The position numbers were made by a program, and so were the translations under genes. The notes under the pieces are model-generated. The model did no database searches. It saw only the letters and a program-made list of their open reading frames with translations, and was not told where the DNA came from. From Laetmonice hystrix (taxonomy: Eukaryota), in NCBI GenBank assembly GCA_965235115.1, contig OZ249436.1:4588001-4652000 (forward strand): a stretch of 64,000 bases of DNA, written 5' to 3'. Position 1 is the stretch's first letter. The number at the start of each line of letters is the position of its first letter. Below, piece after piece: positions 1,584 to 54,839 of the stretch.

Positions 1584-3980
1584 AGTGTCTGAGTGGAGTG
1601 AGGCGGGGAGTGTCTGAGTGGGGTGGGGAGTGGGGGTGTCTGAGTGGGGTTGGGAGTGAGTGTCTCAGTGGGGTGGAGTGAGTGTCTCAGTGGGGTGGAG
1701 AGTGTTTGAGTGGAGTGGGGAGTGTCTGAGTGGGGTGGGGAGTGTCTCATTGGGGTGGAGTGAGTGTCTCAGTGGGGTGGGGAGTGTCTCAGTGGGGTGG
1801 GGTGGGGAGTGAGTGTCTGAGTGGGGGTGTGGAGTGGAGAGTGTCTGCGTGGGGTGGGGAGTGTCTCAGTGGGGTGCAGAGTGAGTGTCTGGGTGGGGTG
1901 TGGAGTGTCTGAGTGGAGTGGGAAGTGTCTGAGTGGGGTGGGGAGTGTCTGGGTGGAGTGGGGAGTGTTTGAGTGGAGTGGGGAGTGAGTGAGTGTCTGA
2001 GTGGGGTGTGGAGTGTTTGGGTGGGGTGGGGAGTGTCTGAGTGGGGTGGGGAGTGAGTGAGTGTCTGAGTGGGGTGGGAAGTGAGTGTCTGAGTGGGGTG
2101 GGGAGTGGAGAGTGTCTGCATGGGGTGGGGAGTGTCTGGGTGGGGTGGGGTGGGGAGTGTCTGAGTGGGGTGGAGTGAGTGTCTCAGTGGGGTGGGGAGT
2201 GTCTCAGTGGGGTGGGGTGGGGAGTGAGTGTCTGAGTGGGGGTGTGGAGTGGAGAGTGTCTGCGTGGGGTGGGGAGTGTCTAAGTGGGGTGCAGAGTGAG
2301 TGTCTGGGTGGGGTGTGGAGTGTCTGAGTGGAGTGGGGAGTGTCTGAGTGGGGTGGGGAGTGTCTGAGTGGAGTGGGGCGGGGAGTGTCTGAGTGGAGTG
2401 GGGAGTTTCTGAGTGGGATGAGGAGTGTCTGGGTGGAACGGGGAGTGTTTGAGTGGAGTGGGGAGTGTCTGAGTGGGGTGGAGAGTGGAGAGTGTCTGAG
2501 AGGGGTGGGGAGTGTCTGAGAGGGGTGGAGAGTGTCTGAGAGGGGTGGGGAGTGTCTGAGAGGGGTGGAGAGTGTCTGAGAGGGGTGGGGAGTGTCTGAG
2601 AGGGGTGGGGAGTGTCTGAGAGGGGTGGAGAGTGTCTGAGAGGGGTGGGGAGTGTCTGAGTGGGGTGGGGAGTGTCTGAGTGGGGTGGGGAGTGTCTGAG
2701 AGGGGTGGAGAGTGTCTGAGAGGGGTGGAGAGTGTCTGAGAGGGGTGGAGAGTGTCTGAGAGGGGTGGGGAGTGTCTGAGAGGGGTGGAGAGTGTCTGAG
2801 AGGGGTGGGGAGTGTCTGAGAGGGGTGGGGAGTGTTTGAGTGGAGTGGGAAGTGTCTAAGTGGGGTGGAGAGTGTCTGAGAGGGGTGGGGAGTGTCTGAG
2901 AGGGGGGGTGTCTGAGAGGGGTGGAGAGTGTCTGAGAGGGGTGGGGAGTGTCTGAGTGGGGTGGGGAGTGTCTGAGTGGGGTGGGGAGTGTCTGAGAGGG
3001 GTGGAGAGTGTCTGAGAGGGGTGGAGAGTGTCTGAGAGGGGTGGAGAGTGTCTGAGAGGGGTGGGGAGTGTCTGAGAGGGGTGGAGAGTGTCTGAGAGGG
3101 GTGGGGAGTGTCTGAGAGGGGTGGGGAGTGTCTGAGAGGGGTGGGGAGTGTCTGAGTGGGGTGGGGAGTGTCTGAGAGGGGTGGGGAGTGTCTGAGAGGG
3201 GTGGGGAGTGTCTGAGAGGGGTGGGGAGTGTCTGAGTGGGGTGGGGAGTGTCTGAGTGGGGTGGGGAGTGTCTGAGTGGGGTGGAGAGTGGAGAGTGTCT
3301 GAGAGGGGTGGGGAGTGTCTGGGTGGGGTGGGGAGTGTTTGAGTGGAGTGGGAAGTGTCTGAGAGGGGTGGAGAGTGTCTGAGAGGGGTGGGGAGTGTCT
3401 GGGTGGGGTGGGGAGTGTTTGAGTGGAGTGGGAAGTGTCTAAGTGGGGTGGAGAGTGTCTGAGAGGGGTGGGGAGTGGAGAGTGTCTGAGAGGGGTGGGG
3501 AGTGTCTGAGTGGGGTGAGGAGTGTCTGGGTGGGGTGTGGAGTGTCTGGGTGGAGTGGGGAGGGTTTAAGTGGAGTGGGGAGTGAGTGAGTGTCTGATTG
3601 GGGTGTGGAGTGTCTGAGAGGGGTGGGGAGTGTCTGAGTGGGGTGGAGAGTGGAGAGTGTCTGAGAGGGGTGGGGAGTATCTGAGTGGGGTGGGGAGTGT
3701 CTGAGAGGGGTGGGGAGTGGAGAGTGTCTGAGAGGGGTGGGGAGTGTCTGAGAGGGGTGGGGAGTGTCTGGGTGGGGTGGGGAGTGTTTGGGTGGGGTGG
3801 GGAGTGTCTGAGTGGGGTGGGGAGTGGAGAGTGTCTGAGAGGGGTGGGGAGTATCTGAGTGGGGTGGAGAGTGTCTGAGAGGGGTGGGGAGTGTCTGAGT
3901 GGGGTGGAGAGTGGAGAGTGTCTGAGTGGGGTGGGGAGTGTCTGAGTGAGGTGGGGAGTGGGGTGGGGAGTGTCTGAGTG
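1584..3980 (+). repeat. G-rich minisatellite, ~20-bp unit GAGTGTCTGAG(T/A)GGGGTGG(G/A), ~2.4 kb, with a degenerate AGTGAGT lead-in from ~1470
   Basis: Directly visible strand-asymmetric G-run repeats; explains the PTQTL/PHSDTP ORFs. Confidence 0.95.
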
Positions 3981-5946: not shown

Positions 5947-6774
5947 TGTATATTTAATGTATTTGCAGGTCATCAGTAAACTTCATTATTATTACTAAAC
6001 CAGAAGGAAGTTTAAGCACCAAAAGTCCATGAGCTTCAGGGTTCTTTAAAAGTCACCATAGAAAATGTATGACATCCAAGATGATTTTTTTTTCAACCGT
6101 TAAGTGTGCAGTATAAGGAAACGTATGGTATATCACTTACAGGGAGCATACAGTTCAGTGATGTCGGAAACGGGGGGAGGGTCACAGGGTCCATGCCCCT
6201 CCACCCACACACACCCACACACACCCACCCACACACACACCAAAGAAACTGGGGCGGGCTAGGTTCCTCCCACGATTCCTGTCTCAGTGGGCCTATAGAG
6301 GGTTGAGTTCTGGCCCTTTCACCGCTGCCATGCACACAACCAAAAATTCTCCTGGAACAGGGCCTAGTTGCCCCCCCCCCCCCCCCACCAAAAATTTGCT
6401 TTCGACATCACCATAATACGACAAGGTACAACCAGCTCGGTAGTTGCAGTGCTTGCTGGTGGTTCATGGGTCTCACTGCCCACTTACATAATCTTTGTGG
6501 GTCAGTGAGTAGCAGAACAGAAGACAGAACAATAGAGCGTCTTACAATAGGCCTTGCGACTAACACCCTAATTTGCATATCAAATAACCCAAGACATGCA
6601 CACGTGACTGCAATATGGAGAGGGCACTGACCACAAATTTGCTGTGTGATTTTCAAAATATCTGTTTATGTTCATTAAAATAAATTTTACAGACGTAAAA
6701 TGTCTATCAAAATGTGGGTTTAATCCTTACATAAGAGGTGTAGTACTTGAATACTTTTAATTTCGGCGGAACTT

Positions 6775-7200
6775 TGTGTTTATCCTAGCATAACGTTAAG
6801 TGTATGTGCACACCCTTTCTGTGGTCCTCGAACTGGAGGGGGATATATAAAGCAAATGCCACCACTGTAGTAATGTAGGGAACTGTGAGGCACCGGTCTC
6901 CACGTTCGGTCGTAGTCTGGAAACAGACGCTGTTGAAAACCTGACAGTACGAAGAGTTCGGCTCGGTTGGTATGTGTCCACTTGGAGAGGTGAGGGTGTA
7001 ACTCGGCGATAAGTGTGACACGACTCTTCTAAAGGGATCTAGCAATAGAACCCGTACCCCGTCAGTGGGATCAATCTGCGGCAAGGTTCCAAACCAGTTG
7101 ACTCTCAATGGGCTATCGTGTGTCTCCAGACGCCAGATCTTCGAACGGTAGGACTTGGACCAGCCATTAAGTCCAGTTTCATTTTTTAAAAGTATTTTCA
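6775..7200 (+). mobile_element. Dispersed LTR-like element, copy A, with a structured core
   Basis: Homologous to 26557-27011. Shares TATATAAAGC (6844 / 26625), an identical 21-bp block (6900-6920 / 26750-26770) and an identical 27-bp block (7127-7153 / 26969-26995). Ends near ATTAAG...GTTTCA. Solo-LTR identity is inference. Confidence 0.55.
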
Positions 7201-7393
7201 ATTTTTAGTTATTCTAAACTCTCCAGTCGCCTATTATACCTGGAACCACTCTAGCCCCAGAATCTGACATTATTGGCATTTGGTCTGATATGAATTTGCA
7301 AACATGCAGGTATAGCTATATCGGAAATAGTTAGAATTTTTCTAACATAAGATTTAATTGGTTCCCTTTCAAGTTTTATTGGGCACAGCTACA

Positions 7394-24463: not shown

Positions 24464-26556
24464 AAAATGCCCAGACGATTTCTGATCGTATTACCACCGG
24501 CCGGCGAGGAGTAGCCAAGTGAAGAAGATGATCCACAAATAGGACGATCAAACAGGTCTTTTGATGGCCAATCCCCCTCACCTCTTCGTATTCTAATCCC
24601 ATTTATCTACACACTTGTAACGACCATCCCTTGCAGATTCTCTATCACCTGCCTGGCGTTATAAACTATGTTAATCTAATGACACAGACAACCATCTGTT
24701 TCATACTCCGCCGAGGGTATCTTGTGGGCCATTTTATCGACCCTAATATATCTTTGCTGGAGGGAAGCCATCCTAGGGAAGCATGCACTGACCAAATCGA
24801 ATCACTGAGGACTGTGGCCCAACAGAATTCGGGCTGGCCTTTGCATATATTTTGGACCAGGACATACATATACATTGTAGCGCTGGACGTAAAAGTCATG
24901 TCTATAGGGAAACATTGGGAGAACACCAAATAGACAGCGGATGTATCTACATTAGGTGTCTGTTTATTTGATCTTCATAGTGACGAATTATTGTTCGGTC
25001 GCTCAGTAGTCTCGACACGTTTTTGAAGCCATTGAGAATCTCCACGAGAATGATAAGAGGGCAAAGTGAACCAAAGAACTACCCAATCAGGCAATCAATT
25101 GGCCACCTCCTCGGCCAGTCGGGTGTTTTTGATGCTCGTGGTGTCAGAGTTCTAGACCTCTGGCCCCTGGGTGGGACAGGCTTCCACTCCATTGTACGGC
25201 TGTAGAAATAAAGCACGGATTCTGTCGCTCGTGTCGGTGGATGGTGGGCGTTGTGCGCTGGCCGGGTTGTCTGTGGACGGCGGCAGGGCGCAGCTGCTCA
25301 AGTCGGCCGCTCCTTAAGTAGGGCATTGAAACGTCCGCACTCTTTGAGGGAGTGACGGTTGCCTGCCTTGACATAGTCTAAAGAGGACCAAAGGAAGTTC
25401 AGGAGGTGTGTTCAAAGAGAGGTGGGTTCAATTATTGAAGGTAGACGAGCTGATTAGATAAACGGAATACAGCGTTACTTCTCCTACTCTCTCCGATAAA
25501 CCAATAGCCGTATCTGCGCACGAACAATCACAGCTCTTTTAGGGAACGATTTTGAGGAATGCAGTTACTTCAAAACGAATGTTAGAGCGCTGGGTATCGA
25601 CTGAGAATTTCTCAAGGACCTCAAAAGCAAATTGCTGGACAATTTTTACAAACGAATTCAGTAGTGGAGACAAAGTGCCTTACGTACCACAAATAGACGA
25701 AAGGAATACCCATGAAATATATAATCTCTGAGGTCGTTTGAATTTTCTCTTTGGGGTCATACATATGGCATCGCTCCGAGTGCGGGATGGGCCTATCTCA
25801 GCACGGGTCAGGCCAGTTCAGGCTGAGCCTTTAGGCGAGCCCTGAACTGGCCTGACAAGTCATACTGTCATACTGTCTTCAGGTGATTAATTAACCATTG
25901 GGAATAATTTGTTGAATTACTGTATGAAAGTAAGCAAGATCTGTGTGGTAACTAGAGTAGGTGAAAGATATGCCAGTATACGCACTCCTCTTATAAAGTC
26001 TTGTGCTATAAATACCAGGTAGTCGTTTCTATTGTCCAGGTTTGTTTGTCACACCTCACGCCAGTGACTCTGTACGTCAGTCAGTCAGTCACAGTCAACA
26101 GTTTTATCTGTAGACAGTATGACACCGCCAGGCATGCTTGGTTGTAGCACCTTGACTTTATTTGGACAGACAGGACGTTAGAAATGGTGTCTTGATTAAT
26201 ATGAAATACTGTTCTACCTGGGAAACCTTCTGATGTTTAAGTCGGTGTTCTCTTATATTGCTTTGTGGTAAAGAACCCACTAAAACACAGCCATGTAGGC
26301 AATTGGTTTTGGAGGTGAGACCCTAATTTGTATATAAATGACTGTAACTATGTGGACCTTGACGCTGGGTGACGACTGTCGTATGCAGAACGTCGGTGTC
26401 ACGTGACTCATTGTCCATGTTGCCCTGATTTTATCATTTTTATTAATATTTTTTAATAAAATCAACTTGCAGGGAGAAACTATGGATGGTCACCCTATTT
26501 GTAATGCTCCAGACGGGATCTACACCTCCAGGGCTTTGGTTGTTGCCTGTAAAATG

Positions 26557-27011
26557 TTTTTATCTTAGTAAAACAATGTGGTTGTGTGGGACACCACTCT
26601 GGAGGTCCAGCTTGACCTCCCCACTATATAAAGCCACGAAACCACTGGTCACATGTAGAGTGAACGGTCACGTCTGAAAGTATCGCTTAGATAGACTCGG
26701 GTCTGTCTCCCATGAACTGGCTGATGGGTCGGAAGGAGCTTGCATGGGTCCACGTTCGGTCGTAGTCTGGCAACACGTGCTGATGGTCAAACACTGACAG
26801 TATGATGAATCACACAGTGTCCACTTGGAGCCGGGAGGGTGCAAGGCTGAGAAAAGTGTGATACGACTCATCTAAAGGGATGTAGCAATACAACCCGTTC
26901 CCCGTCAGTGGGTCGATCTGTGGCACAGTTCCGTATGGCGGCTACCATTGGGTTATCACGTGTTGTCTCAGACGCCAGATCTTCGAACGGTAGGATGAAC
27001 GTATCTAGTCG
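26557..27011 (+). mobile_element. Dispersed LTR-like element, copy B, truncated by an assembly gap
   Basis: Diverged homolog of 6775-7200 with the same conserved blocks. Confidence 0.55.
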
Positions 27012-27222
27012 NNNNNNNNNNNNNNNNNNNNNNNNNNNNNNNNNNNNNNNNNNNNNNNNNNNNNNNNNNNNNNNNNNNNNNNNNNNNNNNNNNNNNNNNN
27101 NNNNNNNNNNNNNNNNNNNNNNNNNNNNNNNNNNNNNNNNNNNNNNNNNNNNNNNNNNNNNNNNNNNNNNNNNNNNNNNNNNNNNNNNNNNNNNNNNNNN
27201 NNNNNNNNNNNNNNNNNNNNNN
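27012..27222. other. Assembly gap (N run)
   Basis: 211 N. Confidence 1.
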
Positions 27223-28793
27223 CTACCACTACTATGCACGGCGCCCCGAAGCCGACATGGCTGGGAGGATCCCCTTTCGTTCAGAAAGTTGAAAATACAT
27301 TTACACGCCTTCTCCGGCCTTTTCTTTTACCGATGCCAAATTTTATAACTTGCGAACCCACGCATTATTAGCAGCACGTTAAGCACACATTTTACACAAA
27401 GACATCAAGAACTATCCCAACACTCCAAGAACTATACCCTGACACTCCAAGATTCGAGAGTGAGCCGGGACTAATTGTTCATGTCATGTTGATCACAATT
27501 CCAGGCCGCATGCGTACGAACCACCCACAAACAATGGCCTCCATATGAGTTGCGTTTTTATGTCATCCAACAGTCACAGAAGACGACAGCACTGTCAAAC
27601 GGATAATGAGAAAACACTAACAGACATTTAATGGCACTTACGATCGGCTTAAACCAGGACTTGCATGGTAATCTTGGGTGCATCGGTCTGTGTATCTGGG
27701 CCTTTTACACACAAACATCCACAGAGACAACAGAAAGACTCGAGTGACCAGCCAATACTGGGCTTGGAGTTCATTTTAGTAAAGGAACAACTCCAAAGAA
27801 AATTGTTCATCAAAACTGAACTCTTTAAATTTAATAGGAAATTATGATCTTTAGAAACTTTACACATCATCATCAGATTGCATTCAATCACATGGGGAGA
27901 GTACAGACTTATTCTAAAGTGTGCCAAGTTGACAAATCGTATTTTTGACCTTCACAAAAACGTAAAGTAAATGCGTAATCGTACAAGAATCGTACAAGTA
28001 GTCAGGTATATCACAGGGGGGAGGGGGGATTTTTTTAGTCGAAAACTATGTTTTTAGGGAGAAATGTTCGGTGTGACAAAAGTGGGCAGAGTGCATGGTG
28101 CATGACAAAAGTCGTGGCCAAACAAATTTGGACCAAAAATTATGAATAAAGTGGTGCCCTCGAGAACGACAAAAGTGGGCTATTTTGTGACAAAAGTGGT
28201 GACCTGTGACAAAAGTAGGCATTTTCCGCGACAAAAGTGGTGACCTGTGACAAAAGTGGTAAAAATGACAAAAGTGGTTGCTACACCTTGACAGGCCTCC
28301 CTATAACTGAATCTCCAGCAAACCTTACAACTAATAGAACTTGACCCAAAGTAAAGGGGTTACTGCTTCAAAGGACATGATTATATGTTCGTAAATAAAA
28401 AGATCCATTGCAGAACAACTTGATTTTGTAAGCCACTTCATCTTCTTTCAACGAACTGAATGAGTTCAAAGCATGAGGTGCATCGTCCCTATTAATTTCA
28501 AATCTGTGCTGCTCAGTCATTGAGGATATTTTCATTACAGAAAGGCGTGACTAGACAAAAGACAGACCCAATTTTATGGCTCGCTGGTACAACCGTCATA
28601 GCAATAAAACGTTTGAATTTTATCCATCTATATCTTTAGGCACCCATGTGAATGATGATTTTTTTCCATCTATACCTTTAGGCACCCATGTAAATGATGA
28701 AAGATGTAAAAGGGGACATTTATACGTTTTCTTTGAAGAGTTGCTATTTGGAGCCTAACTGTTATTTGATGTAAAGGGTGGGTTGTTGAACCT

Positions 28794-32357: not shown

Positions 32358-33090
32358 CAACGTTTTTTTAACTGCATTCTGTGATGGAGAGTTATGCGCC
32401 TGTCCCTGGATAACTCAGTCGGGGACATCAACCAGTTACCCCGCCCCCGCCCCCTTCATGGTATTCGTCCCCAACCCGCGCCCCTCTTATGGGGTGATCG
32501 TCCCTGGGGGTCGACAACTCCAACCGTGACAGTCTCATCTCCCTCCCCGTATACCTTCTGTTGGATCTCGTTAAAACGACACTGATGAAAGGGTCTCGTC
32601 CTATGACTGCCTAGATACTGACCCCGCCCCTGGCCCACGGCCGCAGTATGAGTTAAAACCAGGAAGAAAAGCTGACATATTGGACACAAAACAAGTATGG
32701 TTTTATATAAATGCTATCTACATTATACATTCGGTGAAAGAAAGCGCAGAAAAATATCAATACGTCAGCTAAAAACATTTACTTTTGATATACAGTTGCT
32801 GCATTCAAAACGTGTCAGTTGTGCAAGTGTTTATATAGTGCAAACAAAGCGTGTATCCGCGGTAAATGTTCTATTGTCATGGCGCGTTGTTATTCCAAAA
32901 ACCATTACCAATGACAGATGTGAAAACGTGCAGAGAACCCACCACTGCTTTGATATAAACAGAAAAGAAGAGAGATTGTACATAATTATTGTATGCAATC
33001 TCTTTGATGATACACAGTAGACATATCTAACCATACACAACAACAATAAAGAGTACAAAGTCCTACAGAGTGACGACATATTCTATAGAC

Positions 33091-36000
33091 TTTTACAGTT
33101 ACTGCGTGCGTCCGAACCTGAGGTAGGCGAGGGACTGACATGGTGGTGTTTGTATTAACCGTGTCCGATCCTGAGGTAGGCGAGGGACTGACAGGTGGTG
33201 TTTGTATGAACCGCGTCCGATCCTGAGGTAGGCGAGGGACTGACATGGTGGTGGTTGTATGAACCGTGTCCGATCCTGAGGTAGGCGAGGGACTGACATG
33301 GTGGTGGTTGTATGAACCGTGTCCGATCCTGAGGTAGGCGAGGGACTGACATGGTGGTGGTTGTATGAACCGTGTCCGATCCTGAGGTAGGCGAGGGACT
33401 GACATGGTGGTGTTTGTATGAACCGTGTCCGATCCTGAGGTAAGCGAGGGACTGACAGGTGGTGTTTGTATGAACCGCGTCCGATCCTGCAGTAGGCGAG
33501 GGACTGACATGGTGGTGTTTGTATGAATCCACTATCCCGTTTTACAGTTACTGCATGCGTCCGATCCTGAGGTAGGCGAGGGACTGACATGGTGGTGTTT
33601 GTATGAATCCACTATCCCGTTTTACAGTTACTGCATGCGTCCGATCCTGAGGTAGGCGAGCGACTGACATGGTGGTGGTTGTATGAACCGTGTCCGATCC
33701 TGAGGTAGGCGAGGGACTGACATGGTGGTGTTTGTATGAACCGTGTCCGATCCTGAGGTAGGCGAGGGACTGACATGGTGGTGGTTGTATGGACCCACTA
33801 TCCCGTTTTACAGTTACTGCGTGCGTCCTATCCTGAGGTAGGCGAGGGACTGACATGGTGGTGTTTGTATGAACCCACTGTCCCGTTTTACAGTTACTGC
33901 GTGCGTCCGATCCTGAGGTAGGCGAGGGACTGACATGGTGGTGTTTGTATGGACCCACTATCCCGTTTTACAGTTACTGCGTGCGTCCTATCCTGAGGTA
34001 GGCGAGGGACTGACATGGTGGTGTTTGTATGAACCCACTGTCCCGTTTTACAGTTACTGCGTGCGTCCGATCCTGAGGTAGGCGAGGGACTGACATGGTG
34101 GTGTTTGTATGAACCCACTGTCCCGTTTTACAGTTACTGCATGCGTCCGATCCTGAGGTAGGCGAGCGACTGACATGGTGGTGGTTGTATGAACCGTGTC
34201 CGATCCTGAGGTAGGCGAGCGACTGACATGGTGGTGGTTGTATGAACCGTGTCCGATCCTGAGGTAGGCGAGCGACTGACATGGTGGTGGTTGTATGAAC
34301 CGTGTCCGATCCTGAGGTAGGCGAGGGACTGACATGGTGGTGTTTGTATGAACCGTGTCCGATCCTGAGGTAGGCGAGCGACTGACATGGTGGTGGTTGT
34401 ATGAACCGTGTCCGATCCTGAGGTAGGCGAGCGACTGACATGGTGGTGGTTGTATGAACCGTGTCCGATCCTGAGGTAGGCGAGCGACTGACATGGTGGT
34501 GTTTGTATGAACCGCGTCCGATCCTGAGGTAGGCGAGGGACTGACATGGTGGTGGTTGTATGAACCGCGTCCGATCCTGAGGTAGGCGAGGGACTGACAT
34601 GGTGGTGGTTGTATGAACCGCGTCCGATCCTGAGGTAGGCGAGGGACTGACATGGTGGTGTTTGTATGAACCGCGTCCGATCCTGAGGTAGGCGAGGGAC
34701 TGACATGGTGGTGGTTGTATGAACCGCGTCCGATCCTGAGGTAGGCGAGGGACTGACATGGTGGTGTTTGTATGAACCGTGTCTGATCCTGAGGTAGGCG
34801 AGGGACTGACATGGTGGTGGTTGTATGAACCGTGTCCGATCCTGAGGTAGGCGAGGGACTGACAGGTGGTGTTTTTATGAACCGTGTCCGATCCTGAGGT
34901 AGGCGAGCGACTGACATGGTGGTGGTTGTATGAACCGTGTCCGATCCTGAGGTAGGCGAGGGACTGACATGGTGGTGTTTGTATGAACCGTGTCCGATCC
35001 TGAGGTAGGCGAGGGACTGACATGGTGGTGTTTGTATGGACCCACTGTCCCGTTTTACAGTTACTGCATGCGTCCTATCCTGAGGTAGGCGAGGGACTGA
35101 CATGGTGGTGTTTGTATGGACCCACTGTCCCGTTTTACAGTTACTGCATGCGTCCTATCCTGAGGTAGGCGAGGGACTGACATGGTGGTGTTTGTATGGA
35201 CCCACTGTCCCGTTTTACAGTTACTGCATGCGTCCGATCCTGAGGTAGGCGAGGGACTGACATGGTGGTGTTTGTATGGACCCACTGTCCCGTTTTACAG
35301 TTACTGCATGCGTCCTATCCTGAGGTAGGCGAGGGACTGACATGGTGGTGGTTGTATGAACCGTGTCCGATCCTGAGGTAGGCGAGGGACTGACATGGTG
35401 GTGTTTGTATTAACCGTGTCCGATCCTGAGGTAGGCGAGGGACTGACATGGTGGTGTTTGTATGAACCCACTATCCCGTTTTACAGTTACTACGTGCGTC
35501 CGATCCTGAGGTAGGCGAGGGACTGACAGGTGGTGTTTGTATGAACCCACTATCCTGTTTTACCGTTACTGTATGCGTCCGATCCTGAGGTAGGCGAGGG
35601 ACTGACATGGTGGTGTTTGCATGAACCGCGTCCGATCCTGAGGTAGGCGAGCGACTGACATGGTGGTGGTTGTATGAACCGTGTCCGATCCTGAGGTAGG
35701 CGAGGGACTGACATGGTGGTGGTTGTATGAAGCGCGTCCGATCCTGAGGTAGGCGAGGGACTGACATGGTGGTGGTTGTATGAACCGCGTCCTATCCTGA
35801 GGTAGGCGAGGGACTGACATGGTGGTGGTTGTATGAACCGCGTCCTATCCTGAGGTAGGCGAGGGACTGACATGGTGGTGGTTGTATGAACCGTGTCCGA
35901 TCCTGAGGTAGGCGAGGGACTGACATGGTGGTGTTTGTATGAACCGTGTCCGATCCTGAGGTAGGCGAGGGACTGACATGGTGGTGGTTGTATGAACCGT

Positions 36001-36754
36001 GTCCGATCCTGAGGTAGGCGAGGGACTGACAGGTGGTGTTTGTATGAACCGTGTCCGATCCTGAGGTAGGCGAGGGACTGACATGGTGGTGTTTGTATGA
36101 ACCGTGTCCGATCCTGAGGTAGGCGAGCGACTGATATGGTGGTGTTTGTATGAACCGCGTCCGATCCTGAGGTAGGCGAGGGACTGACAGGTGGTGTTTG
36201 TATGAACCGTGTCCGATCCTGAGGTAGGCGAGGGACTGACATGGTGGTGGTTGTATGAACCGCGTCCGATCCTGAGGTAGGCGAGGGACTGACATGGTGG
36301 TGGTTGTATGAACCGCGTCCGATCCTGAGGTAGGCGAGGGACTGACATGGTGGTGGTTGTATGAACCGTGTCCGATCCTGAGGTAGGCGTGGGACTGACA
36401 TGGTGGTGGTTGTATGAACCGTGTCCGATCCTGAGGTAGGTGAGGGACTGACATGGTGGTGTTTGTATGAACCGCGTCCGATCCTGAGGTAGGCGAGGGA
36501 CTGACAGGTGGTGTTTGTATGAACCGTGTCCGATCCTGAGGTAGGCGAGGGACTGACAGGTGGTGTTTGTATGAACCCACTCTATCCGTTATACAGTTAC
36601 TGCGTGTGTCCGATCCTGAGGTAGGCGAGGGACTGACATGGTGGTGGTTGTATGAACCCACTATCCTGTTTTACCGTTACTGCATGCGTCCGATCCTGAG
36701 GTAGGCGAGGGACTGACATGGTGGTGGTTGTATGAACCCATTATCCCGTTTTAC
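33091..36754. repeat. Compound minisatellite of 53-bp and 80-bp unit variants, 3.66 kb
   Basis: GTCCGATCCTGAGGTAGGCGAGGGACTGACATGGTGGTGGTTGTATGAACCGT, with or without a CACTGTCCCGTTTTACAGTTACTGCATGC segment; source of the 349-aa repetitive ORFs. Confidence 0.98.
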
Positions 36755-42097: not shown

Positions 42098-42487
42098 NNN
42101 NNNNNNNNNNNNNNNNNNNNNNNNNNNNNNNNNNNNNNNNNNNNNNNNNNNNNNNNNNNNNNNNNNNNNNNNNNNNNNNNNNNNNNNNNNNNNNNNNNNN
42201 NNNNNNNNNNNNNNNNNNNNNNNNNNNNNNNNNNNNNNNNNNNNNNNNNNNNNNNNNNNNNNNNNNNNNNNNNNNNNNNNNNNNNNNNNNNNNNNNNNNN
42301 NNNNNNNNNNNNNNNNNNNNNNNNNNNNNNNNNNNNNNNNNNNNNNNNNNNNNNNNNNNNNNNNNNNNNNNNNNNNNNNNNNNNNNNNNNNNNNNNNNNN
42401 NNNNNNNNNNNNNNNNNNNNNNNNNNNNNNNNNNNNNNNNNNNNNNNNNNNNNNNNNNNNNNNNNNNNNNNNNNNNNNNNNNNNNNN
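42098..42487. other. Assembly gap (N run)
   Basis: 390 N. Confidence 1.
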
Positions 42488-44487
42488 GCGATGATGATGA
42501 TGGCGATGATGATACCGGGATAAATATTGGTGGTGTTCCGCCAGCAGGGGGAGAACGATTTTTAGACGCAGTGCTCAATGTGAAGATTGACCCGCTCTGT
42601 GATTTTCACAAAAAAAGGTCTTAAACAAAACGGGTATTATGTGCATGTAATCTCAAAATGTGCTTTCAATTTAGCTAATTGTGTGCATTTTCCTTACCAT
42701 GAACCAGGGTCGCTGGCATTTCCTGTTGAAGGTCATTGTTTTCAAGTGAAGGTCAACGTCTCTACGACGATATCAGAGCCAGAATCAGCAAACACTTCGC
42801 TTCGATGTTCCGAGGATTACGTGTTCCTATATACTGCTATCAATGTAAAAGGGTATTGCTTGTCAAAAAAGGACACCTTTTCAGGATCATCAAGGGGCAA
42901 GCCCCCCCCCCCCCCACGTCCCTGTATAACTAAAGTTTGACTATAGTCGTTCCGTCGGTCTCGCGACTTTCCCGCCCGCGAGAAAAGTGAGGAGACAGGC
43001 ACTAAAGAAACTTTCCACGTTTTAAATCTGGGGAGACACTTCTAATTCTGGTAACAAATAGATTTAACCAATAAAACCAATTCCTGTCGATGGGTAATAA
43101 TCATTCGAGGGAAAGAACTGGTATTGTGTCCTCCTTTAACAGCTCGACACTATGGCAACCTTTCGACGGAGTAAGAAGCGACGAGATCAATGCCTGTTTT
43201 GATCACGCTGAATATTAAGGAGTTCTGTCAGTGGAAAGTGGCGAGGTCCATTTACACAATGAACACTAAGTCCACAACAGCTGCGTTAAGACGATTACCG
43301 GTGAAAAGTCTAGGCAACATTTGTGCGTTCTGCGCTGAATGAGGTAATTAGTTGGGAATGTGTTGGGAAACAGGACAAATTAAATAGGATTATGTTGGAT
43401 TATGCCAACAGTTTCTGTGCTCAGATTTCCATTCGTTCCATCCTAATATTATAATGTGTCTGATCTAAAACAGACCTCCATGATTTTCCTTGGTGTTTTT
43501 GTTTTCACTTTGGTTGTTTGTTCAGTAAATCTATGGAACAATAGACGTAAACACTCCAGGCTTAATTCGATGGGACACAAACGTGGTCCACGCTCATCTG
43601 GAATTCTAATTTTATGACAGGACTAAGGAAGCGCATATAATGCACAATTATTATTATTTAAAGTATCCCAGTTTTTGTAACCGGATGTAAAAAAATTATA
43701 TGACTCATTATTGAACCATTACGTACTTCTTTATTGTGTTGTTCTTTTGTTTTCTTGTTAATTTTTCATTTCTAATGAATCACGAGCAAATGACAGCAGG
43801 TCTATGTTTTCCTACCGAAGCGTGATTCAGGATAAGATTTTGTTTTTTTTAATCCACCAGGGAAATGTGTTTGTGGTGTTCTCTTCTGTTCCTCGGTGAC
43901 GTATGATACTTTCTGTCGCTGTTAAACATCATTAAGTTAGACTTAACATTCATCTACCAGTTCTTTTGTATAAAAAAAAGTAATTTGTACGTAAATAATT
44001 CATATATGATTTCACACGCAGCTGCACATGTGGAGAAAGGAAAGAACAAAAATGACTTTATCTTATTGAGAATTATAAGTAGCTGGTAATTATTTACGTT
44101 GGATTTCACAATGTAAAAACGCTGGTATAAAGTTTTGTTCTTAAAAACGTATAGTCGTGTCGTGAGTGTGGTTTTCGTTCGCTCCATGGCATTGGATCCT
44201 CACCCCTCGCGTGTGTCAGGCCTGCACCTCGGTCTAATTAATGACGCCGATATGGGAACTATGAGGAAATTATCTTGTGCTTGATCCCTACAACAAAATA
44301 ATGACATGGGTGAAAACATCGCTTTACACCGTTGGCTGTCGGTGTTGGCACTCGAGTTCTGTACGTCCAAATCCGATTCCAAATACACTGGGCTCGGCAA
44401 GGGTCGCTTGGATCCCATCTGCTGAGACAGAAGGCTATCTTAAAGAGGCAGGTCGTAAAGAAATCCCAACTTATATATTTCATAAAG

Positions 44488-50900: not shown

Positions 50901-53900
50901 TGACAGGTAAGTTTCTGACAGGTGGTCCTACGGAACCGTCCTGACAGGTAAAATTGTGACAGGTAGTCCTATATTCCCGTCCTGACAGGTAAGACTGTGA
51001 CAGGTAGTCCTGTGGACCCGTCCTGTGACAGGTAGTCCTATAGACCCGTCCTGACAGGTAGTCCTATGGACCTGTCCTGTGACAGGTAAAACTGTGACAG
51101 GTTGTCCTATGGACCCGTCCTGTGACAGGTAAGATTATGACAGGTAGTCCTATGGACCCGTCCTGACAGGTAGTCCTATAGACCCGTCCTGACAGGTAAG
51201 ATTGTGACAGGTAGTCCTATAGACCCGTCCTGACAGGTAAGATTGTGACAGGTTGTCCTATGGACGGTCCGTCCTGACAGGTAAGACTGTGACAGGTAGT
51301 CCTATAGACCCGTCCTGACAGGTAAGACTGTGACAGGTTGTCCTATGGACGGTCCGTCCTGACAGGTAAGACTGTGACAGGTAGTCCTATAGACCCGTCC
51401 TGACAGGTAAGATTGTGACAGGTTGTCCTATGGACGGTCCGTCCTGACAGGTAAGACTGTGACAGGTAGTCCTATAGACCCGTCCTGACAGGTAAGATTG
51501 TGACAGGTAGTCCTATAGACCCGTCCTGACAGGTAAGATTGTGACAGGTAGTCCTATAGACCCGTCCTGACAGGTAAGACTGTGACAGGTTGTCCTATGG
51601 ACGGTCCGTCCTGACAGGTAAGACTGTGACAGGTAGTCCTATAGACCTGTCCTGACACGTAAGACTGTGACAGGTTGTCCTATGGACGGTCCGTCCTGAC
51701 AGGTATGATTGTGACAGGTAGTCCTATAGACCTGTCCTGACACGTAAGACTGTGACAGGTTGTCCTATGGACGGTCCGTCCTGACAGGTAAGACTGTGAC
51801 AGGTAGTCCTATAGACCTGTCCTGACACGTAAGACTGTGACAGGTTGTCCTATGGACGGTCCGTCCTGACAGGTAAGACTGTGACAGGTAGTCCTATAGA
51901 CCTGTCCTGACACGTAAGACTGTGACAGGTTGTCCTATGGACGGTCCGTCCTGACAGGTAAGACTGTGACAGGTAGTCCTATAGACCTGTCCTGACACGT
52001 AAGACTGTGACAGGTTGTCCTATGGACGGTCCGTCCTGACAGGTAAGACTGTGACAGGTAGTCATATAGACCTGTCCTGACACGTAAGACTGTGACAGGT
52101 TGTCCTATGGACGGTCCGTCCTGACAGGTAAGACTGTGACAGGTAGTCCTATAGACCTGTCCTGACACGTAAGACTGTGACAGGTTGTCCTATGGACGGT
52201 CCGTCCTGACAGGTAAGACTGTGACAGGTAGTCCTATAGACCTGTCCTGACACGTAAGACTGTGACAGGTTGTCCTATGGACGGTCCGTCCTGACAGGTA
52301 AGACTGTGACAGGTAGTCCTATAGACCCGTCCTGACAGGTAAGATTGTGACAGGTAGTCCTATAGACCCGTCCTGACAGGTAAGACTGTGACAGGTAGTC
52401 CTATAGACCTGTCCTGACACGTAAGACTGTGACAGGTTGTCCTATGGACGGTCCGTCCTGACAGGTAAGACTGTGACAGGTAGTCCTATAGACCTGTCCT
52501 GACACGTAAGACTGTGACAGGTTGTCCTATGGACGGTCCGTCCTGACAGGTAAGACTGTGACAGGTAGTCCTATAGACCTGTCCTGACACGTAAGACTGT
52601 GACAGGTTGTCCTATGGACGGTCCGTCCTGACAGGTAAGACTGTGACAGGTAGTCCTATAGACCTGTCCTGACACGTAAGACTGTGACAGGTTGTCCTAT
52701 GGACGGTCCGTCCTGACAGGTAAGACTGTGACAGGTAGTCCTATAGACCTGTCCTGACACGTAAGACTGTGACAGGTTGTCCTATGGACGGTCCGTCCTG
52801 ACAGGTAAGACTGTGACAGGTAGTCCTATAGACCTGTCCTGACACGTAAGACTGTGACAGGTTGTCCTATGGACGGTCCGTCCTGACAGGTAAGACTGTG
52901 ACAGGTAGTCCTATAGACCTGTCCTGACACGTAAGACTGTGACAGGTTGTCCTATGGACGGTCCGTCCTGACAGGTAAGACTGTGACAGGTAGTCCTATA
53001 GACCTGTCCTGACACGTAAGACTGTGACAGGTTGTCCTATGGACGGTCCGTCCTGACAGGTAAGACTGTGACAGGTAGTCCTATAGACCTGTCCTGACAC
53101 GTAAGACTGTGACAGGTTGTCCTATGGACGGTCCGTCCTGACAGGTAAGACTGTGACAGGTAGTCCTATAGACCTGTCCTGACACGTAAGACTGTGACAG
53201 GTTGTCCTATGGACGGTCCGTCCTGACAGGTAAGACTGTGACAGGTAGTCCTATAGACCTGTCCTGACACGTAAGACTGTGACAGGTTGTCCTATGGACG
53301 GTCCGTCCTGACAGGTAAGACTGTGACAGGTAGTCCTATAGACCTGTCCTGACACGTAAGACTGTGACAGGTTGTCCTATGGACGGTCCGTCCTGACAGG
53401 TAAGACTGTGACAGGTAGTCCTATAGACCTGTCCTGACACGTAAGACTGTGACAGGTTGTCCTATGGACGGTCCGTCCTGACAGGTATGATTGTGACAGG
53501 TAGTCCTATAGACCTGTCCTGACACGTAAGACTGTGACAGGTTGTCCTATGGACGGTCCGTCCTGACAGGTAAGACTGTGACAGGTAGTCATATAGACCT
53601 GTCCTGACACGTAAGACTGTGACAGGTTGTCCTATGGACGGTCCGTCCTGACAGGTAAGACTGTGACAGGTAGTCATATAGACCTGTCCTGACACGTAAG
53701 ACTGTGACAGGTTGTCCTATGGACGGTCCGTCCTGACAGGTAAGACTGTGACAGGTAGTCCTATAGACCTGTCCTGACACGTAAGACTGTGACAGGTTGT
53801 CCTATGGACGGTCCGTCCTGACAGGTAAGACTGTGACAGGTAGTCCTATAGACCTGTCCTGACACGTAAGACTGTGACAGGTTGTCCTATGGACGGTCCG

Positions 53901-54839
53901 TCCTGACAGGTAAGACTGTGACAGGTAGTCCTATAGACCTGTCCTGACACGTAAGACTGTGACAGGTTGTCCTATGGACGGTCCGTCCTGACAGGTAAGA
54001 CTGTGACAGGTAGTCCTATAGACCCGTCCTGTGACAGGTAGTCCTATAGACCCGTCCTGTGACAGGTAGTCCTATGGACCTGTCCTGTGACAGGTAAGAC
54101 TGTGATAGGTAGTCCTATAGACCCGTCCTGTGACAGGTAGTCGTATAGACCCGTCCTGTGACAGGTAAGACTGTGACAGGTAGTCCTAAAAACCCGTCCT
54201 GTGACAGGTAGTCCTATGGACACGTTCTGTGACAGGTAGTCCTATGGACCCGTCCTGTGACACGTAAGACTGTGACAGGTAGTCCTATGGACCCGTCCTG
54301 TGACAGGTAGTCCTAGGACCCGTCCTGTGACAGGTAGTCCTATGGACCCGTCCTGTGACAGGTAGTCCTATAGACCCGTCCTGTGACAGGTAGTCCTATG
54401 GACCCGTCCTGTGACAGGTAAGACTGTGACAGGTAGTCCTATGGACCCGTCCTGTGACAGGTAGTCCTATAGACCCGTCCTGTGACAGGTAGTCCTATGG
54501 ACCCGTCCTGTGACAGGTAAGACTGTGACAGGTAGTCCTATAGACCCGTCCTGTGACAGGTAGTCCTATGGACCCGTCCTGTGACAGGTAGTCCTATAGA
54601 CCCGTCCTGTGACAGGTAGTCCTATGGACCCGTCCTGTGACAGGTAAGACTGTGACAGGTAGTCCTATAGACCTGTCCTGACACGTAAGACTGTGACAGG
54701 TAGTCCTATAGACCCGTCCTGTGACAGGTAGTCCTATGGACCCGTCCTGTGACAGGTAGTGCTATAGACCCGTCCTGTGACAGGTAAGACTGTGACAGGT
54801 AGTCCTATAGACCCGTCCTGTGACAGGTAGTCCTATGAA
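50901..54839. repeat. 3.9-kb satellite: ~27-29-bp and 14-bp subunits at the flanks, homogenised 85-bp (41+44) higher-order repeat in the core
   Basis: Period 85 verified (52561 to 52646); sub-units GACAGGTAAGACTGTGACAGGTAGTCCTATAGACCTGTCCT and GACACGTAAGACTGTGACAGGTTGTCCTATGGACGGTCCGTCCT. Confidence 0.98.

Follow-up and report, generated by a model that had tools for sequence, protein, structure and literature searches.

The DNA analysed here is a stretch of 64,000 nt from the genome of Laetmonice hystrix (contig OZ249436.1, positions 4,588,001 to 4,652,000; called the window below), which holds two diverged copies, A (6900-7153) and B (26750-26995), of a segment of about 250 nt that we call the core. 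Our results show that the core has an RNA fold which is under selection on the + strand, and they suggest that it probably belongs to a cassette that forms a complete gene for a small non-coding RNA and is carried inside non-autonomous DNA transposons as cargo. The initial annotation had proposed that a mobile element contains an RNA fold of about 250 nt that is under selection, and the covariation described below bears this out; it had overlooked the copy number, the carrier transposons and the layout from promoter to terminator. The genome searched comprised 627 Mb in 35 contigs, and every result rests on that single animal genome.

Copy number and conserved fold of the core

The core had been taken for a two-copy element, which does not hold at the scale of the genome. 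Genome-wide there are 1,127 exact matches to a degenerate 15-mer near its 5' end, corresponding to about 1,100 copies, as well as 874 to an 18-mer of the GCAA hairpin and 678 to a 21-mer at the 3' end of the core. The description of A and B as diverged copies was correct: they differ at 51 of 242 shared columns (79% identity). When the whole genome was searched with each core, the best 40 of more than 1,200 first-look candidates had 96-98% identity. Core identity is about 97% within type A or type B and 79% between the types. The first 100 places found on contig 1 with 15-mer words comprised 36 A-type, 58 B-type and 6 mixed cores. Core words that mix A and B, such as TCTGGAAACACGTGC, occur at C1:39797699, 48947522, 32039510 and 49450595, and suggest either a third lineage or recombinants. 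Outside this genome, a scan of metagenome contigs with an 18-mer gave 3 chance matches in bacterial-looking DNA, where the similarity goes no further, and no relatives of the element were found by sequence words in the literature searched.

The fold was derived with RNAalifold from an alignment of 51 distinct cores (alignment A2). The consensus has 62 pairs, 10 of them with pair-preserving changes on both sides. A closing rod, P1-P4, joins the first and last 35 nt or so, and the junction bears P5-P7, formed by GAAGAG/CUCUUC, GUGUCCACUU/AAGUGUGACAC and an apical stem. The P8 hairpin, GGG-AU(C/G)UA-GCAA-UA(G/C)AA-CCC, and two small hairpins complete the structure. Most of the helices named initially (CGTTCG/CGAACG, TCTGG/CCAGA, GAAGAG/CTCTTC, GTGTCCACTT/AAGTGTGACAC and CTA-GCAA-TAG) were recovered in both single-sequence and consensus folds. 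CTGAC/GTCAG is invariant across copies and was not selected by RNAalifold. The proposed GTCTG-GAAA-CAGAC hairpin had to be given up, since it is not kept in B, where GUCUGG pairs with a distant CCAGAC.

The consensus structure was strongly supported by covariation. Paired cells amounted to 99.2%, compared with 34-44% when the 3' partners were slid by 1-3 columns. The covariation score was 0.158, compared with 0.02-0.03 after sliding and 0.075 +/- 0.003 after shuffling, and none of 500 shuffles reached the observed value. As a control for circularity, a structure was predicted from the majority sequence of type A alone and judged on the 51 fixed differences of B. This minimum free energy (MFE) structure had 69 pairs that are canonical in B, compared with 59.2 +/- 2.7 under random placement of the differences (p = 3.5e-4), and 6 double compensations where 1.4 were expected (p = 0.0014). 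The reverse test, in which the B structure was judged on A, gave p <= 5e-5. Pairing of the same helices reaches 99% on the + strand and 92% on the - strand, and the folded molecule is assigned to the + strand because 232 G-U cells keep the helices better paired there.

Compensatory changes were found in 11 pairs, 7 of which differ on both sides between A and B, while the remaining 4 changed stepwise within a type. Among distinct A cores, pair 88-118 is U-A in 21, U-G in 6, C-G in 5 and C-A in 1 (path U-A>U-G>C-G). Pair 82-125 is G-C in A, with G-U (10) and A-U (6) in distinct B cores (path G-C>G-U>A-U). The C-G to G-C swap closing the GCAA loop, which had been read from the two window copies, is real and recurs inside type A: pair 145-154 is C-G in 24, C-C in 3 and G-C in 7 of the A cores and G-C in all B cores (path C-G>C-C>G-C). 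In an unbiased sample, the first 100 places on contig 1, the same pair was G-C in 88, C-G in 10, C-C in 2 and G-G in none. The other double substitution proposed initially, GAAGAG/CTCTTC in A versus GATGA/TCATC in B, stood only in part. It applies to window copy B and 2 other of the 17 distinct B cores, and the other 14 have a U.U mismatch; pair 58-133 is accordingly A-U in A, and U.U (14) or U-A (3, including the window copy) in B (path A-U>U.U>U-A).

Cassette layout and carrier transposons

A BLAST comparison of the long A-type and B-type elements returned nothing shared beyond the core; a longer common block was seen on closer reading. In both types the order is an upstream element, a TATA box, ACCACTG, ATGTAG, the core, a trailer of about 40 nt and a T run. 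The upstream element is GCACACCCTTTCTGTGGTCC in A and is recognisable as GGACACCACTCTGGAGGTCC in B; it lies 17-36 nt upstream of the TATA box, is kept in 12 A subfamily representatives, and is a possible proximal sequence element. The TATA-region sequence common to A and B is TATATAAAGC. The box TATATAAA that had been noticed upstream of both window copies is indeed present, at 6844-6851 and 26625-26632. Among the 12 A representatives the TATA box is canonical in 9; L008 and L027 have variants, and L016 has only TATATAAC, at the position of ATGTAG. ATGTAG lies 29 nt (A) or 28 nt (B) past the first T of the TATA box. The distance from the box to the core is 56 nt in A and 125 nt in B, owing to about 70 extra nt between box and core in B.

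On the 3' side, the trailer ends AGTTC(C/A)C and is followed by 4 T or more, usually 5-8. For B, the trailers were taken from copies at other loci, since the corresponding part of the window (27012-27222) is N. Every distinct A copy has a run of at least 4 T there, and so do 29 of the 30 distinct B copies, the remaining one (L041, an array member) having TTT only. Homology between A and B stops at the T run, after which A goes on as AGTACTCTGAATTTTTAG... and B as a CT-rich microsatellite. This (CT)n microsatellite, of variable length, follows the T run on the 3' side in almost every B copy (L036-L064) and is the source of much of their length variation. An internal T4 is absent from 44 of 46 distinct predicted transcripts.

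The ends of the predicted RNA are complementary. The hexamer after ATGTAG can pair with the hexamer abutting the T run in a helix, P0, which is GGGAAC/GUUCCC in A and GUGAAC/GUUCAC in B, a G-to-U change being matched by C-to-A. Variants of P0 extend the helix or preserve pairing through wobble, namely GGGAACUGC/GCAGUUCCC in L008, GGAACUG/CAGUUUC in window copy A and GUGAAC/GUUCGC in L043. P0 is paired in the MFE folds of all 7 full predicted transcripts (4 A, 3 B).

Conservation follows the borders of the cassette. Across 13 A subfamilies, mean pairwise identity is 0.4-0.65 far upstream, 0.73-0.85 in the promoter (6660-6895), 0.93-0.99 in 6895-7132, 0.89 in 7133-7160 and below 0.5 past 7160. 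The flanks of the A subfamilies are 15-80% diverged, while their cores differ by 1-7%. Loci were picked by core similarity, which inflates identity within a subfamily and cannot explain a core shared between subfamilies whose flanks have diverged. The core has remained 93-99% identical though the subfamily flanks drifted far, and this argues for selection on the RNA in the lineages that founded new copies. Taken together, the promoter-like flank, a start region about 30 nt past the TATA box, the paired ends and the T-run limit give the layout of a complete small-RNA gene.

Based on this layout, transcription would begin shortly past the TATA box and finish at the T run, most likely by RNA polymerase III (Pol III) in the manner of its type-3 genes. 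This would yield a discrete RNA, about 310 nt long in A and 380 nt in B, whose ends are paired and which has an oligo-U tail. Such an RNA is probably expressed as an abundant structured molecule and would most likely act as a ribonucleoprotein scaffold. Our best guess is that it may serve its carriers, for example by binding a host or transposon factor as a scaffold or decoy. We favour an RNA that benefits the carriers over a host gene, a preference that we hold loosely.

The carriers themselves are of two kinds. Long A-type elements (e.g., L011) measure about 2.0 kb and have a 15-bp terminal inverted repeat (TIR) that begins CAGGGCCGTAGCCTG, the other end being the reverse complement. They are flanked by target-site duplications (TSDs) of 5 bp, GTCTT in L011 and GCATA in L028. 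Long B-type elements (e.g., L052:335-2282) measure about 1.95 kb and have TIRs of about 60 bp beginning TGTAGCAACC, with 3-6 subterminal CCACTTTTGTC repeats at each end in inverted orientation. Their 5-bp TSDs are GCAGT in L050 and TCAGG in the L055-61 array, in which it occurs on both sides of the units; two B copies (L048, L052) have no TSD. The termini of A and B are unrelated to each other. No open reading frame (ORF) longer than about 100 aa was found in A-type or B-type elements. Transposon proteins were sought in 76 fetched loci chosen by core similarity. None was found there, the sole Pfam match being a host sugar-transporter exon, and the gag-pol, tyrosine recombinase and TnpB/Fanzor ORFs that had been suggested as possible neighbours are absent from these loci. 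With TIRs and TSDs but no ORF and no transposon protein in the 76 loci, the carriers are assigned to non-autonomous TIR DNA transposons.

Within the carriers the cassette has an internal position, at a distance of 0.85-1.2 kb from the 5' TIR. There are 1,938 occurrences of the A-type TIR word in the genome, and +/- pairs of this word are often about 90-190 bp apart, mostly 150-190 bp, the size of miniature inverted-repeat transposable elements (MITEs). Such MITEs with CAGGGCCGTAGCCTG TIRs are typically about 165-190 bp long and have no cassette (e.g., C1:10029801-10029989 and C1:16400802-16400981; also L008:667-836 and L074:1055-1231). Several A-type copies contain a complete MITE, positioned at the 5' side of the part with the cassette or close to it. 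B-type TIR pairs on contig 1 are mostly 1.8-2.8 kb apart, with three at about 4.5 kb inside an array, and every pair that was cross-checked against core positions encloses a B core. L030 is a deletion derivative in which the TIR is joined directly to the promoter region. Short copies were interpreted as fragments, as their boundaries are scattered and they have no common termini or TSDs; an independent mobile unit of 700 bp was rejected on the same grounds.

Many copies are tandemly arrayed, with a repeat period of 2.6-5.3 kb that is often about 4.3 kb. In the array at C1:62498856-62622447, at least 29 B-type units recur about every 4.3 kb. Since only the 3' TIR word was detected in each of these units, their 5' TIR is either missing or altered. 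Both A-type and B-type elements are bordered by a satellite of about 800 bp in tandem arrays, in which an element and 1-3 monomers give the period of 2.6-5.3 kb; it was seen at L021:1-645 and 2651-3264, in the L055-L061 flanks, in L032 and in L034. The satellite may be either a preferred target or a sequence co-amplified with the elements after insertion.

The B-type carrier resembles the Ginger2/Tdd transposons, which have TGTNR termini, TIRs of 50-180 bp and a TSD of 4 bp in animals or 5 bp in Tdd-4/5 (PMC2836005). The B termini, TGTAG...CTACA, fit TGTNR, and the TIR and TSD lengths are comparable. However, no integrase-like transposase was found in the 76 loci, and the A-type termini (CAGGG...) do not fit. 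Membership of the B-type carrier in this group is only a lead from its ends.

The features of the two window copies are as follows.

6112-7274, + strand: copy A, a TIR-less fragment of an A-type element, delimited by homology with genomic copies; best relatives L066 (over 6219-7267) and L067 (over 6112-7274); no A-type TIR within the window
6808-6827, + strand: conserved upstream block GCACACCCTTTCTGTGGTCC of copy A, a possible proximal sequence element
6844-6851, + strand: TATA box TATATAAA of copy A, about 56 nt before the core
6873-6885, + strand: conserved ATGTAG (predicted start region, 29-34 nt past the first base of the TATA box) and 5' strand of P0 (GGAACTG, 6879-6885) of copy A
6899-7153, + strand: core of copy A, closed by UCC/GGA and CGUUCG/CGAACG (P1), 62 consensus pairs
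7174-7180, + strand: 3' strand of P0 (CAGTTTC) of copy A
7182-7187, + strand: oligo-T run (T6) of copy A, predicted terminator
25883-28285, + strand: copy B, a B-type element truncated on its 5' side with the 3' end intact, aligning to L052 from position 639 on
Ending at 28285, + strand: 3' terminus of copy B, ...GGTTGCTACA
26589-26608, + strand: conserved upstream block of copy B
26625-26632, + strand: TATA box TATATAAA of copy B, 125 nt before the core
26653-26665, + strand: conserved ATGTAG and 5' strand of P0 (GTGAAC, 26660-26665) of copy B
26666-26748, + strand: B-specific leader segment, about 70 nt longer than its A counterpart (about 13 nt)
26749-26995, + strand: core of copy B
27012-27222: N run that cuts the trailer of copy B; the 3' strand of P0 and the T run would lie there or just before
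28075-28285: 3' subterminal repeats (eight of GACAAAAGTGG type, of which 6 are exact and 2 have one mismatch) and B-type TIR

Elsewhere in the window there is a second N run (about 42100-42500), and three long satellite or minisatellite arrays occupy 1800-3500 (period 20 bp, GC 0.62 and a strong skew of G over C), 33056-36700 (period 53 bp) and 51099-54300 (period 85 bp). No convincing protein-coding ORF was found in the 64-kb window.

Alternative explanations for the cassette

Several points weigh against the interpretation as a small-RNA gene under selection. The folding energy is unremarkable, only about 1.5 standard deviations better than that of shuffles (z about -1.5), so that the evidence for the structure is the covariation and not the energy. 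All of that covariation comes from one genome, essentially from two clades and their sub-lineages. A leader-trailer helix of at least 6 bp arises in 18.5% of shuffles, and the weight of P0 therefore lies in its fixed position and one compensatory change. That internal T4 runs are lacking has no statistical significance (chance 0.36-0.49 for each type). MITEs with A-type TIRs and no cassette are common, which indicates that the cassette is cargo, not required for DNA transposition. Finally, start site, polymerase and 3' end are all read from the sequence, and RNA polymerase II (Pol II) is equally compatible with a TATA box and a conserved start region.

In another explanation, the block is a Pol II promoter with a structured first non-coding exon (ending CG|GTAGGA) of a transposase gene. 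The copies would then be internal-deletion derivatives, and the fold would have been selected in autonomous parents, for example for translation control or export. We consider such an exon unlikely, and its selection in autonomous parents unlikely to the same degree. A TATA box followed by a conserved start region some 30 nt downstream agrees with it, a GT (7148 and 26990) directly follows the core in both A and B, the cassette is internal at 0.85-1.2 kb from the 5' TIR, and deletion derivatives do exist, as L030 shows. However, homology between A and B resumes past this GT at GACCAAG...AGTTC(C/A)C and ends at the T run, and several L021-type subfamilies have GGTATAGG at the place of the GT. 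The GGA of GGTAGGA pairs with the UCC before CGUUCG in 45 of 45 sequences, so that the conservation of GGTAGGA is explained by structure; a splice donor at CG|GT is judged less likely, the GGA being better explained as part of the closing helix. The pairing of the predicted 5' end with the bases abutting the T run suits a short discrete RNA and not an exon. In addition, the 76 loci contain no transposase remnant or long ORF, and at least 7 A subfamilies as well as B would each require a parent of their own.

A more specific role can be imagined for the product of a small-RNA gene. It is distinctly unlikely, in our judgement, that the cassette is a selfish small-RNA gene of a new class that uses DNA transposons as vehicles, or that its RNA is a cofactor bound by the transposition machinery or by a host silencing or repair factor. 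If it were a cofactor, the factor would bind the RNA preferentially at its site of transcription, and cassette-bearing elements would found more daughter copies.

Alternatively, the cassette could be a captured or hitch-hiking host small-RNA gene or pseudogene family with no transposon role, its conservation reflecting recent spread, recombination and gene conversion. The cassette-less MITEs transpose well with the same A-type TIRs, and the presence of the cassette in two unrelated TIR families fits capture or exchange of internal segments. The tandem arrays, with periods of about 2.6-5.3 kb, are as in amplified small-RNA genes. Nevertheless, we regard a role-less host sequence as very unlikely. 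Compensatory pairs are not created by gene conversion, and the stepwise compensations within A and B sub-lineages are common to several copies, which indicates that they arose in source copies of the transposon families. The A subfamilies combine strongly diverged flanks with nearly identical cores, no known RNA family matches, and the true 7SK gene lies elsewhere.

A cis element acting at the DNA level, either a transposase binding platform or a single-stranded-DNA fold used in transposition with no RNA, would fit conservation across non-autonomous elements that encode nothing, and G.T pairs are possible in single-stranded DNA, but it is highly improbable, because the TIRs and subterminal repeats of A and B are unrelated and presumably served by different transposases, MITEs without the block are mobilised, the block is flanked by a promoter-like sequence on its 5' side and limited by a T run on its 3' side, and TIRs with TSDs point to double-strand cut-and-paste and not to a single-strand mechanism.

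Comparison with known systems and implications

The identities that could be named for the core were rejected one after another. Rfam gave 0 matches for the whole window at the gathering score and no match for the element in L001, L021 and L052 even at E<=10, which leaves no known ribozyme or intron class of the kind considered initially. The single full-length 7SK match (RF00100, 58 bits) lies at C7:18450595-18450893, away from the elements. The suggestion of a long terminal repeat (LTR) R/U5 or packaging element also failed: the carriers have TIRs and 5-bp duplications, their ends are inverted and not direct, they show no LTR pair, primer-binding site (PBS) or polypurine tract (PPT), and the flanks of array units have no TGG-type PBS or purine tract; a solo LTR was rejected as well. 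A short interspersed nuclear element (SINE) was rejected because there is no tRNA-like part (ARAGORN), no Rfam match to 5S or 7SL and no A tail, and because the promoter is upstream in all copies. A 138-aa ORF on the - strand (6785-7201) is not a coding exon, as copy B has no matching ORF; indels of 3-4, 11, 1, 2 and 1-2 nt between A and B break every reading frame.

An RNA guide had also been suggested. The cassette matches the ends of its own type over 7-9 nt, no longer than it matches those of the other type, so that complementarity is no better than in this cross-family control, and no effector ORF was found in the 76 loci; a guide or bridge RNA was rejected on both counts. The omega RNA of TnpB/Fanzor and the bridge RNA of IS110 are similar to the predicted RNA in being structured, element-encoded non-coding RNAs with conserved helices and variable segments. 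In contrast to them, no nuclease or recombinase gene lies nearby, the RNA is internal and not at an element end, and its variable parts have no type-specific complementarity to the element ends.

Type-3 Pol III genes (U6, 7SK, RNase MRP/P, Y and vault) have an upstream TATA promoter and a further upstream element, and they terminate at a T run. The cassette is similar in its TATA box about 30 nt before the predicted first base, its upstream element, its T-run end and its length of a few hundred nt, and the predicted RNA shares with Y and vault RNAs 5' and 3' ends paired in a terminal stem and an oligo-U tail. It differs in having no Rfam match, a separate 7SK locus and about 1,100 copies inside transposons, and its polymerase is deduced from the layout. 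The 4.5SH and 4.5SI RNAs of mouse are lineage-restricted, about 90-100 nt long and SINE-related, with internal promoters and hundreds of gene copies, and the 4.5SH genes lie within a tandem unit of about 4 kb. Like them, the cassette copies would represent amplified small-RNA genes, many of its units standing in arrays with a period of about 4.3 kb. However, the RNA predicted here has 310-380 nt, an upstream TATA box and TIR transposons as carriers.

Mobile elements with small-RNA-type units have been described before. The TRIMp3 elements (Cassandra, Helenus and Ajax) have a Pol III promoter that comes from a gene for a small RNA, and Ajax occurs in nemerteans with 5-bp TSDs (PMC10886601). TRIMp3 elements and SINEs resemble the carriers in being non-autonomous mobile elements that hold a small-RNA-like transcription unit, but they are retrotransposons with LTR, PBS and PPT or tails of the LINE (long interspersed nuclear element) type, and their units are derived from tRNA or 5S with internal promoters (PMC10886601). 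The carriers here have TIRs, no PBS or PPT, no tRNA-like part, an external TATA box and an unclassified RNA. The central domains of SINEs (CORE, V, Deu, MESC and Snail) are blocks of 40-100 nt within retroposed Pol III transcripts, and the V domain has a predicted conserved stem-loop (PMC4758252). They are similar to the core as central blocks kept across otherwise different families, whereas the block described here is 250 nt long, has a putative promoter and terminator of its own and moves at the DNA level.

In SINEs, Cassandra, Helenus and Ajax, mobile elements already known to hold small-RNA-type units, a decayed copy of a tRNA or 5S RNA serves as the promoter. L. hystrix differs in having an RNA outside described families, with a putative external TATA-type promoter and terminator, whose fold has been maintained by compensatory changes while the carrier transposons diverged or were swapped. 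If the cofactor reading were true, this would be the first family of eukaryotic cut-and-paste transposons to owe its success to a structured RNA of its own that is transcribed separately. Should the RNA help its carriers, an RNA component would be added to eukaryotic DNA transposition; should it serve the host instead, it would be a high-copy small RNA specific to the lineage and comparable to 4.5SH of rodents.

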